The notes under the pieces are model-generated. The model saw only the letters and a program-made list of their open reading frames with translations, searched no databases and was not told where the DNA came from. 64,000 nt of DNA from Styela clava (taxonomy: Eukaryota), in NCBI RefSeq assembly GCF_964204865.1, contig NC_135255.1:17980001-18044000 (forward strand), in the 5' to 3' direction. Position 1 is the first letter of the stretch. Each line of letters starts with the position of its first letter. The position numbers and the translations under genes are program-made. Below are positions 58 to 2,302 of the stretch, one piece after another.

Positions 58-855
58 TCAAAAACATTGGAGTTGAAGGGGATACAATGAATCTTAGCGA
101 ATGCAAAGTTATTTTTCCGGATGGAACATTCAATAAACAAACAAACGTTTGGATGTCAGTTGGATTGGACAATTCAATATGCCCATCACAATACGTCGCA
201 ATCACACCAACACTTAACATCAGTGCAGAATCAACATTACGCAAAAATGCAATTGTACAAATGAAGTCATGGCGTCTCGAGCTGAAGAAAGAGGACATCG
301 ACATAATTCACTTCATCAACGCCACTGACTGGGACATTATCGAACCTGATCTAGTCATGCATGACAGAACTATAGAATTCCGTTGTCAAGAGTTCAGTCC
401 AGTAATTGCCGCTATAAAACAATGGTTCTACGGCTCTCCCCCACCCCCAGTTCTCAAAGAAAATTTTCTTTACATCATGGATCAAAATCGATTCTGCATC
501 ACATTTTTTAATCCAATTGAACCTGTTGAAAGAAGCATAATTACATATTACGAGAGCCGAGATGCACAACCGATACCAACAAGATTCAACCAAGTAATTT
601 TAAGGCATGGTGACGAAATTCATGTCAAACTACGAATTGACGGAGGGCCCGAAAATTTGCGATTTAATGAACCCAATGGTCACAATTTTTCTGTAGATGA
701 TGACTTCCTAAGAGCACACAGACATGACTTTGAATTTGAACTTCTTCCTGAATCACAGCAATATCCAAAAATTCTCATCAAATGTGAATAGGAAAAGAAT
801 GAAGATGAAATTAATAGAAAAGTGATTAAATTTACTTTTCCACTGAAACCTCCAA
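58..855 (+). CDS. Large internal exon: ZU5 + UPA domains (contains ORF 87..791 and the premature TAG)
   Basis: 234-aa ORF extends upstream to the acceptor at 57. The reading frame stays open after the TAG (EKNEDEINRKVIKFTFPLKPP) up to a canonical donor at 856. Confidence 0.75.
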
Positions 856-2302
856 GTGAGTGGGAATGTAACTGTTGTTTTTCTCTGTATGATGCCTCGA
901 GCAAGTTACCTTCATTCCATGTCAACTATGAAAGGGTCTCTTTGTCACAATTTAGATTACACATTACATAATTGACTGGTCTTAAAATCCCATCATTTTA
1001 AATGAGAAGTTCGTGCCCTGACTTTTTGTTTAATATTCTTGCAAGTTGTGAGAAATGTTTTACATTGGATGCACATTATCTTGAGAAAGATAATATATTG
1101 ACCTGTGAGCAGCGTTTGATAAATCACACCTTGATTGATATCTACTTTTTATAAGACCATATATCTTTTTTTGATTATACTGATTTGAAAACAATCATTG
1201 GAATAAAATGTTTTTCTAATTACATATCTTTTCATTCTTCAATCATAGAACCCAAAGGACCTCCACCTGTCAACTTTGCCGGAGCAAATATTGAGAATGT
1301 GAATTTACCGGAGAGAGAAAATCAGAATAATCAGCAAGTGGTGAGATATGATTATATTTTCTTCTCATTTGAATACTTTTGAAATTTGAATTTGTCAAGT
1401 CCATGCTCTCAAAAACTAATAACTGGCTAACTAATCTCATACCCAACATAGACTGGTAACCGGCGGAGAGGATGTTATTTGCCATATGATTAAGCTGTCT
1501 TATCAACTTTCCTCTCTCCAGGGATAAATATGTAAATCCTATCCTATCCTAATATTTGTAAAATTTCAGCATCTTCTGGCATCTCCTTTTATCAAGCCTT
1601 GTTAAGAGGAAATGAACGTGAAGTGACTTATCATATTGATAGCAGAAATCAAACTTGTCTAATTTATAATTAGTGAGCTTTGGAAATGTTTAACATGGAG
1701 TTGATTGACATAAAGTTCTATTTAATAGTTACATTTTATGCTGATAGCAATCCCCATAGTATCCTCCTTGTAACTGTGGGATATTGGAAAACTTTTCCAT
1801 ATGAAATATTCTATCTCCATATTAATCTGCACTTTAAAACACTGTCAATAAAGATACTGGTCTATGTTGGATAGTAAAATTCATTTTTAAGGGGCAAAAT
1901 GAACAAAGAGAACCTGGTGCAGTAGGTGGAAACCAAGCAAGAGAACCACAACTGAATGAACCACTACATCATGAAAGTGATTACGGTACGTGAAATGTTA
2001 TCACTAAATAATTTTTTTTAGCTTTACAAACTTTATATCAAATAGAGAATCTACTAAAAATCTTTGATATACTTGGAATAAGTCTTGGAGTCATTTTGGA
2101 TGAAATTCTATTTTCGCTGTGTCTACTGCGCAATGAGCAGTGACCCCTGAAATGTTACTATTTTTGCTGAAAACTAACCAGGTTTTTCCACAAGTTCGTC
2201 TGTAACAAATGATATTCAAGATTTGTGATTGTTGCTAGTCTGATTTGTTTTCAATTTCATCTGAATGAGCAATTTTTTTTAGATTCCGATGATCTTCGCT
2301 GA
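58..2302 (+). CDS. 3' portion of a spliced gene encoding a ZU5-UPA (FIIND-like) protein; exons 58-855, 1249-1340, 1892-1985, 2283-2302; in-frame TAG at 789-791 (nonsense allele or pseudogene; otherwise the CDS ends at 791). The 5' exons lie outside the window.
   Basis: Acceptor ttttcag|58, donor 855|gtgagt, acceptor catag|1249, donor 1340|gtgaga, acceptor tttttaag|1892, donor 1985|gtacgt, acceptor tttttag|2283, TGA at 2300-2302. Phases 1/1/0/1 all match. The translation KNIGVEGDTMNLSECKVIFPDGTF...VAITPTLNI...IVQMKSW resembles the ZU5 pattern (IG.EGG.L....V.IP.GA...SP.V) and is followed by EFSPV and a beta-rich UPA-sized segment. Confidence 0.7.
1415..1550 (+). mobile_element. SINE-like 3' end with (ATCCT)n tail (other copies 14006-14130 +, ~24545-24670 -)
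   Basis: Three dispersed homologous ~130-nt segments (aactggctaactaatcccatacc...ggataaatatgtaaatcctatcct) sharing the 3' end and truncated at the 5' end. Confidence 0.6.

Follow-up and report, generated by a model that had tools for sequence, protein, structure and literature searches.

A 64,000-nucleotide stretch of the genome of the sea squirt Styela clava (hereafter the window; its first base is C6:17980001, and positions given without a contig are window positions) carries, close to its start, a gene copy that we interpret as encoding a highly divergent self-cutting module of the ZU5-UPA type. Our assessment, to which we assign a probability of roughly 0.6, is that this predicted self-cutting module belongs to an expanded sea-squirt family and that the window copy is transcribed and truncated, its reference allele being most likely disabled. 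The exon almost certainly encodes a ZU5-UPA fold, the family is expanded to about 80 copies in Styela clava, and the window copy is transcribed and spliced; self-cleavage in the family is likely, judging from the fold, the structural register and the conservation of the relevant residues. The gene was first noticed in a reading of the DNA letters alone (the original prediction), which treated positions 58 to 1340 as one exon. This turned out to be incorrect: the splice in a contig of run X3 resolves the segment into an exon at 58-855, a GT..AG intron at 856-1248 and a further exon at 1249-1340. The features of the gene within the window are as follows.

58..855 (+), ZU5-UPA coding exon between acceptor AG 56-57 and donor GT 856-857, defined by the open frame, the AlphaFold2 model, the fold matches and the 855 to 1249 splice in the X3 contig
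60..395 (+), ZU5 subdomain, residues 1-112 with Phe112 as the last; the rat NLRP1 ZU5 chain 7crv_A and ankyrin ZU5 chains align to model residues 1 to 112-123 with Z 9.2-12.6
309..311 (+), His84, 29 residues before Ser113, a candidate helper residue comparable to CARD8 His270; present in 71/79 other copies
342..344 (+), Glu95, separated from Ser113 by 18 residues, as CARD8 Glu279 is from Ser297; Glu in only 7/79 other copies
393..398 (+), Phe112-Ser113, predicted autoproteolytic scissile bond, in register with the NLRP1 fragment 6x6a_G; FS in 74/79 and YS in 2/79 other copies
396..788 (+), UPA subdomain, residues 113-243; UNC5b, rat NLRP1 and CARD8 align to model residues 1..243, and 6x6a_G to 114..243
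789..791 (+), in-frame TAG of the reference, polymorphic; ATG in the RNA-type contig, Met or Ile in paralogues
856..1248 (+), GT..AG intron, spliced out in the X3 contig; bins 939-1206 have zero depth in runs X1, X2 and X3
1249..1340 (+), tail exon 1, a Pro-rich stretch followed by the N-rich motif VNFAGANIENVNLPERENQNNQQ; matches the P0002 tail in tblastn, has 0 differences from the spliced X3 contig and no Pfam match
1892..1985 (+), tail exon 2, a Q/E-rich segment between AG 1890-1891 and GT 1986-1987; matches P0002 residues 705-735 in tblastn with 77% identity, and X1 has depth in bin 1877-2010
2283..2494 (+), last exon after AG 2281-2282, with six acidic codons, the stop TGA 2300-2302 and the 3' untranslated region; covered by an X1 contig at 2282-2494, frame read by hand

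The exon at 58-855 is in phase 1 at both ends, such that the frame survives its skipping, and its translation from nucleotide 60 runs for 243 codons without a stop before the TAG. The ZU5-like start of this translation (60-860) is KNIGVEGDTMNLSECKVIFPDG, and IIHFINATDWDIIEP within it contains His84. The window gene was searched and folded exon by exon. The AlphaFold2 model, built on an alignment of 38 sequences (A1) that includes 11 unnamed relatives from other sources, has a mean predicted local distance difference test score (pLDDT) of 88.9 and a predicted template modeling score of 0.81. In a Foldseek search of the PDB, the cytoplasmic domain of UNC5b is the top match (E 1.6e-8, template modeling score (TM) 0.74), followed by the ankyrin ZU5-ZU5-UPA-death domain structure, the rat NLRP1-DPP9 complex (E 3.4e-6) and the CARD8-DPP9 complex (E 9.6e-5). 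Structure alignment with VIA-align gives Z 16.6 for UNC5b (233 of the 243 residues aligned), 15.2 for ankyrin-B, 14.9 for the rat NLRP1 FIIND and 14.6 for the CARD8 FIIND (214 aligned residues each); these four matches span model residues 1..243, and unrelated folds reach Z <=6. The nearest clusters in the ESM Atlas are ZU5/UPA (0.96) and FIIND (0.93). The ZU5-UPA fold that the original prediction had proposed is thus supported by a model that matches the structures of UNC5b, ankyrin-B, NLRP1 and CARD8, and on the strength of this model the window protein is a member of the ZU5-UPA superfamily. A phmmer search against all PDB chains yielded no match for the window protein; the family member P0022 scores 26.2 bits on the Pfam ZU5 model PF00791 (cut-off 21), so that the window family is linked to ZU5 at the sequence level, transitively only.

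The predicted cut site was placed by register. The rat NLRP1 ZU5 chain 7crv_A covers model residues 1..112 and ends at residue 112, GAIN-domain matches also stop at or near this residue, and the C-terminal fragment of human NLRP1 (6x6a_G, residues 1214-1335) aligns to model residues 114-243. According to an excerpt of the study by D'Osualdo et al. (PMC3210808), Ser1213 of NLRP1 and Ser297 of CARD8 are the cleavage nucleophiles; in CARD8, Phe296 is a buried anchor, His252 and His270 are required, and Glu279 modulates cleavage, and UNC5b has Leu at the position of the essential CARD8 Phe. Given this register and these nucleophile data, Phe112-Ser113 is the structural counterpart of the cut site in FIIND (F1212-S1213 in NLRP1). 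The original prediction had located the His at 309-311 and the Phe-Ser pair at 393-398, within QEFSPVIAAI and separated by 29 residues from His to Ser, and had assigned the pair to an NLRP1/CARD8-type cleavage position; the translation bears out the former, and in the structure alignment the pair falls where ZU5 meets UPA and coincides in register with the sites of NLRP1 and CARD8.

These residues are conserved across the family, in line with the original prediction. All genomic matches to the exon were fetched, and two search rows proved to be pieces of one copy, leaving 79 copies besides that in the window. The dipeptide is FS in 74 of these, YS in two, FT in one (L031), FG in one (L008) and broken in one (L084), that is, FS or YS in 76/79, and His84 is retained in 71. 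Five of the eight copies without His84 have a His directly before the Phe (PIDD-type HFS or HFT), compared to none of the 71 copies with His84; these five count as approximately two events because they form two groups of near-identical copies. The window copy itself has Glu, not His, in front of Phe112 (Glu-Phe-Ser). A Pro after the Ser is present in the window copy and in 29/79 other copies, and internal stops within the aligned domain are found in 3/79. The alignment A1 shows the same pattern: the anchor is F in 36 rows and Y in two, and the next residue is S in 31, C in three, T in two, G in one and L in one (S/T/C in 36/38). In this alignment, His84 is present in 27/38 rows, a His directly before the Phe in 6/11 rows without His84 and 0/27 rows with it, and a His at either of the two alternative positions in 33/38 rows. 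The presence of the exon at 81 places in the genome, with the dipeptide and the His kept in most copies, indicates that neither the exon nor the dipeptide is a chance occurrence.

The size of the family emerges from a six-frame search of the Styela clava genome with the window exon, which gave at least 81 matches at E<=0.001 (100 candidates scored), most of them in a long array on contig C2. By comparison, a search of 1.84 billion representative proteins recovered only 31 relatives, and the named ones, among 20 checked, are all uncharacterized proteins of Styela clava. Complete members have the order NACHT, leucine-rich repeats (LRR), linker, FN3, ZU5-UPA and output, as exemplified by P0007, where the output is a tail. 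Pfam detects a NACHT domain upstream of the module in P0007, P0010, P0013, P0017 and P0022, and a NOD2 winged helix as well in P0013 and P0022. FN3 is also the modelled fold of the exon preceding the module (pLDDT 89.0), which matched integrin beta4, titin and other FnIII domains at TM 0.65-0.78. In related proteins, NACHT and LRR thus lie ahead of the module as they do in NLRP1, which supports the likeness to NLRP1-type sensors that the original prediction had suggested.

Most often, a short tail that is N/Q-rich and acidic serves as the output; certain members have instead a caspase, a kinase together with an RNase 2-5A domain, a death domain (at the end of P0017) or a membrane anchor. No CARD was detected by Pfam in any of the family proteins scanned. 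The caspase is fused to the module in one open frame in P0003/P0032 and at loci L009 and L010, with the motifs SHG/THG and QFCRG; the closest solved relatives of the P0003 caspase are a caspase-2 construct (E 4.5e-22) and CED-3 (6.6e-19), followed by caspase-3.

Several individual paralogues deserve description. The ZU5-UPA-caspase genes occupy L009:1486-3228 (+) and L010:508-2268 (-), and L008 has a ZU5-UPA exon at 1501-2220 (-) and a caspase open frame at 203-1297 (-) in the next exon; with Gly in place of the cut-site Ser (F-G), L008 is predicted to be non-cleaving. P0004 (979 amino acids) contains FN3, ZU5-UPA and the tail motif followed by a protein kinase and a Ribonuc_2-5A domain, an output like that of RNase L and IRE1, and has a near copy at C1:30974502-30975221 (L057) in which Arg replaces His84. 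P0022 (1356 amino acids) combines NACHT-LRR with two tandem ZU5-UPA-type modules, the first without F-S and the second with G-F-S, and ends in VIQGNNVLIGDGTMNIN. In P0001 (1017 amino acids), two FN3-ZU5-UPA units are followed at the C-terminus by a hydrophobic stretch that, by eye, resembles a membrane anchor.

In most copies, including that in the window, the module is followed by approximately 90 residues with a Pro-rich part, a short N-rich motif, a Q/E-rich part and an acidic end. The N-rich and then acidic tail of the original prediction is indeed encoded in the window, in exons 1249-1340, 1892-1985 and 2283-2302, where the last exon ends similarly to P0002 (DDDSDDLG); its further claim, that this tail is not of the CARD or death-domain type, agrees with the lack of any Pfam family, CARD included, at E<=10 in the window tail exons. 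Five family tails compared with Pfam at the same threshold gave nothing other than one chance-level match to FMN_bind_2, and comparison of the tails with PDB sequences gave only a weak match to a hexapeptide-repeat enzyme (E 8.2). Tail exon 1 has 56 matches in the genome, and related motifs recur in distant subfamilies, namely NFYGD..V..G.M in P0004, P0006 and P0007, NLYGDFNVAGN at L030 and VLIGDGTMNIN in P0022. The core of a RHIM is the tetrad (I/V)-Q-(I/V)-G. The likeness of the tail motif to a RHIM-type or beta-solenoid-type repeat is, we presume, a resemblance only, without support from Pfam or the PDB, and the RHIM/amyloid interpretation of the tail was rejected: no RHIM match was obtained in Pfam and no relevant sequence in the PDB, and the window motif does not contain the tetrad.

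We also considered a separate partner gene carrying the tail motif, as extra tail-exon matches lie 15-20 kb downstream of array genes. The candidate in C2:2643000-2692999, the single unit of the C2 array that was examined (similarly placed extra matches are listed at other units), was rejected as a separate effector gene, since it consists of an FN3 exon and tail exons without a ZU5-UPA exon. In this unit, the ZU5-UPA gene is followed some 16-20 kb downstream by another FN3 exon, to which the two tail exons directly succeed (G000:C2:2650585-2653216, minus strand, inside L085/L088). A splice from FN3 to the tail would preserve the frame because the ZU5-UPA exon has phase 1-1, and these exons might represent either a partial duplicate or an alternative 3' end. 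The tail of the P0007 type has five matches in the genome, all of which are beside family genes, and neither this search nor that with tail exon 1 brought to light a separate gene that carries a matching motif.

The 5' part of the window gene lies just upstream of the window and includes a linker exon at L023:8291-8374 and an FN3-like exon at C6:17979016-17979282 (L023:9016-9282). The latter is interrupted by an in-frame TGA (L023:9076-9078, C6:17979076-17979078; 923-925 bases before the window) at the position where 5/5 intact aligned paralogue exons have Trp. A tblastn search of the 40 kb upstream of the window (C6:17940001-17980000) with 10 family proteins detected no NACHT or LRR exons on either strand, only the linker and FN3 exons. 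Of 424 LRR candidates, 150 were scored, and the nearest exons within this subset lie at C6:17850390-17865487, on the opposite strand. LRR exons of the 57-residue, ribonuclease-inhibitor type are abundant throughout the genome, where all 150 scored candidates out of the 424 matched, mostly on C2 and at C6:20.7-21.4 Mb.

The second stop, the TAG directly after the UPA domain, does not appear in the original prediction. The DNA-type run X8 retains it (depth 55.8, a single letter at both T and A), and paralogues read KCEMEKNEDE or KCEIEKNEDE at this site. In the spliced X3 contig, the changes 789 T>A and 790 A>T replace the TAG with ATG; this contig differs from the reference in 5/240 letters in exon 58-855 and in 0/87 letters in exon 1249-1335. 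Because the nearest genomic paralogue of the window exon is only 79-80% identical in protein sequence, the X3 contig is most simply explained as another allele. The same contig joins 855 directly to 1249, and contigs of run X1 are identical to the window at 60-179 and 240-407. The contigs of the RNA-type runs are confined to exons and have low depths of 2-8; the exact GT..AG splice speaks for runs X1-X3 being RNA. Neither a frameshift nor a further stop is present within the 243-codon domain or the tail exons. The ratio of nonsynonymous to synonymous substitution rates (dN/dS) is 0.26-0.42 between the window exon and its seven closest paralogues and 0.20-0.64 among those paralogues; because the former values fall within the range of the latter, any loss of function would be recent. 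Taken with the TGA in the FN3 exon, the TAG right after the UPA domain and the 40 kb upstream in which no NACHT or LRR match was obtained, this suggests that the reference allele at the window locus is likely to be non-functional, and that the window copy is probably a truncated family member recently disabled in the reference haplotype.

A stronger version of this conclusion, that the locus is a dead fragment of a duplicated NOD-like receptor (NLR) gene, devoid of present function and with apparent transcription that is read-through or noise, appears doubtful to us, even if it is the best of the alternatives. It would account for the two in-frame stops in the reference, the 40 kb without NACHT or LRR exons, the tandem repeats that fill the upstream region and the low contig depths. 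Against it stand the precision of the 855 to 1249 splice, contigs limited to exons, zero intron depth at 939-1206 in all three RNA-type runs, an allele that lacks the TAG and an otherwise intact frame through the domain and tail exons.

The next alternative concerns the module itself, which would not cleave but serve, like its counterparts in UNC5 and ankyrin, as a ZU5-UPA scaffold that holds the LRR/FN3 part and the tail or effector in a closed, autoinhibited state, with the F-S pair kept for packing. UNC5b and ankyrin-B are the best fold matches, the Phe is a buried anchor in the excerpted account of CARD8 (PMC3210808), Glu95 is poorly conserved, and the Ser is replaced by G in L008 and by L in P0021, all of which this explanation accommodates. 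Nevertheless, we regard it as unlikely: the position of the CARD8 Phe is Leu in UNC5b according to the same excerpt (PMC3210808) but F or Y in 38/38 family sequences, and packing alone hardly explains this pattern, in which 36/38 rows also retain S, T or C as a nucleophile and 33/38 a His at one of two positions.

Several points weigh against a self-cutting module in a copy such as that in the window. Assignment to FIIND is by modelled structure only, and the data put the window protein no closer to FIIND than to ankyrin or UNC5: Z values of 14.6-16.6 fail to separate FIIND from other ZU5-UPA proteins, and the top match is the non-cleaving UNC5b. Whereas the structure comparison came out as the original prediction would have it, with a ZU5-UPA match that includes the NLRP1 and CARD8 FIINDs, the sequence comparison did not, as Pfam found 0 families at E<=10 in window:60-788, including ZU5 (PF00791), FIIND (PF13553) and UPA (PF17217); the 38-sequence A1 profile gave three chance-level matches to PDB sequences and no ZU5, UPA or FIIND chain. 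The equivalent of CARD8 Glu279 is Glu in only a small minority of copies, and the conserved Phe is also a structural anchor, so that conservation alone is no proof of catalysis. As for the locus, the RNA nature of runs X1-X3 is a guess of the tool, the X3 contig could in principle stem from an unassembled near-identical copy and not from an allele, an LRR exon could lie farther upstream given that 150 of 424 LRR candidates genome-wide were scored, and it is more probable that the window copy has been disabled or truncated than that it works as a sensor.

Finally, it is highly improbable that the window copy functions as a small, almost ZU5-UPA-only protein, from the Met after the FN3 TGA to the TAG, that regulates or poisons the UPA oligomers of paralogues like a decoy: the locus is transcribed and spliced, the 120-residue protein model P0008 (99% identical) begins at exactly that first Met, and the exon does not exceed the paralogues in dN/dS, but the TAG is not fixed, being ATG in the RNA-type contig, the downstream tail exons are intact and spliced, the TGA replaces an invariant Trp, and the pattern of TAG, TGA and tail fits recent decay better, the low dN/dS mostly reflecting history before the stops.

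Beyond the coding exons, long tandem repeats on both strands lie at L023:2000-5500 and 7285-7850 (C6:17972000-17977850), between the 5' exons of the window gene and the sequence upstream, and read as SHVSHLSHV-like or PRVALV-like open frames. Very high-copy repeats also occupy 1341-1608 and 2547-4000, in the tail introns and the 3' region, where the summed X8 contig depth is from thousands to >100,000, compared to about 55 for unique sequence, with many short rearranged joints. Farther along the window, exons of a bHLH-PAS gene were identified at 11488-17661 (-), with Pfam bHLH_NPAS4 at 17299-17658 (E 2.3e-14), PAS_11/PAS_3 at 13491-13898 and a long low-complexity open frame at 11488-13017.

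Immune sensing by functional degradation has its textbook examples in NLRP1 and CARD8. Under the self-cutting interpretation, the Styela module would cut its own chain between Phe112 and Ser113, with Ser113 as the nucleophile, the buried Phe as the anchor and His84 as a helper; in copies without His84, a His directly before the Phe might take over the helper role. The two pieces would remain associated as long as the N-terminal sensor part stays intact and in place; once that part is destroyed or moved away, the freed UPA-output fragment would oligomerise and act, as in NLRP1 and CARD8. In the caspase fusions, the protease domains would be brought together without an adaptor. UPA-promoted assembly has been described for CARD8 and NLRP1 (PMC7794386, in excerpt). 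For the Styela proteins, we infer cleavage, release and signalling from homology of fold, register and residues.

A bolder proposal is that in sea squirts ZU5-UPA serves as a general cut-and-release switch that connects NLR-type sensors to interchangeable outputs in one polypeptide, such as the fused caspase-2/CED-3-like protease or the RNase L-like kinase-RNase, and that the short-tailed majority, including the intact allele of the window gene, signals through the conserved N-rich motif after UPA as a RHIM-like or beta-solenoid polymerisation seed. This is speculative and, in our estimation, about as unlikely as the non-cleaving scaffold; if true, the fused caspase would amount to an inflammasome or PIDDosome without adaptors.

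As far as excerpts of the literature indicate, CARD8-/NLRP1-like proteins are present in all searched clades except the vase tunicate and lamprey (PMC11258412), and a 2024 survey lists FIIND-CARD only for human and fish NLRs (PMC11508797). In the material available from these and other papers, no account was found of tunicate NLRs with FIIND or ZU5-UPA, nor of any fusion of ZU5-UPA with a caspase, and the supplementary species tables of PMC11258412 and PMC11508797 might list tunicates; in the main text of the Styela genome paper (PMC7540406), the terms NLR, NACHT, caspase and ZU5 do not occur. We regard the family as a known switch in a form not described before: in a tunicate, about 80 copies of a module share the fold and the cut-site signature of NLRP1 and CARD8, have diverged beyond recognition by Pfam and lead into a caspase, a kinase-RNase or a membrane anchor, none of them a known output of FIIND proteins. 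Should cleavage be confirmed, the NLRP1 principle either predates vertebrates or was reinvented, and the fused UPA-caspase proteins would constitute a minimal system for UPA-driven activation. The window copy itself contributes only a polymorphic, probably null allele.

Among known systems, the FIINDs of NLRP1 and CARD8 share with the Styela module the two-subdomain fold, the F-S pair at the subdomain boundary and a His upstream of it (at 29 residues, versus 27 in CARD8), and NACHT-LRR precedes the module in paralogues just as it does in NLRP1. Unlike these proteins, the family does not contain a CARD, has FN3 inserted before the module, lacks any Pfam FIIND match or sequence-level link to FIIND, and conserves neither the Glu279 equivalent nor the Pro after the Ser; its outputs are the N/Q-rich acidic tail or, in paralogues, a caspase, kinase-RNase, death domain or membrane anchor.

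PIDD1 has the architecture LRR-ZU5-ZU5-UPA-death domain, autoprocesses at HFS and activates caspase-2. It resembles the family in the LRRs upstream of ZU5-UPA in paralogues, in the HFS/T of 5/79 copies, in the tandem ZU5-type modules of P0022 and in the affinity of the P0003 caspase to the caspase-2 construct and CED-3. The family differs in that the caspase is part of the same polypeptide instead of being recruited via death domain and CARD adaptors, in the absence of a death domain from most copies and in the Glu before the Phe of the window copy.

UNC5B, a transmembrane netrin receptor with a death domain, has a cytoplasmic ZU5-UPA-death domain region that is the top structural match of the window model. 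The sequence identity is 7%, and UNC5B has Leu at the anchor and serves as a template, not as a cleaving protein, in the excerpt of PMC3210808. The GAIN domain of adhesion G protein-coupled receptors is comparable in that its subdomain B aligns with the ZU5 half of the module (Z 7.7-10.9), ending at or near residue 112. GAIN domains are extracellular, and the likeness is confined to the first half of the module, the UPA subdomain having no counterpart there.

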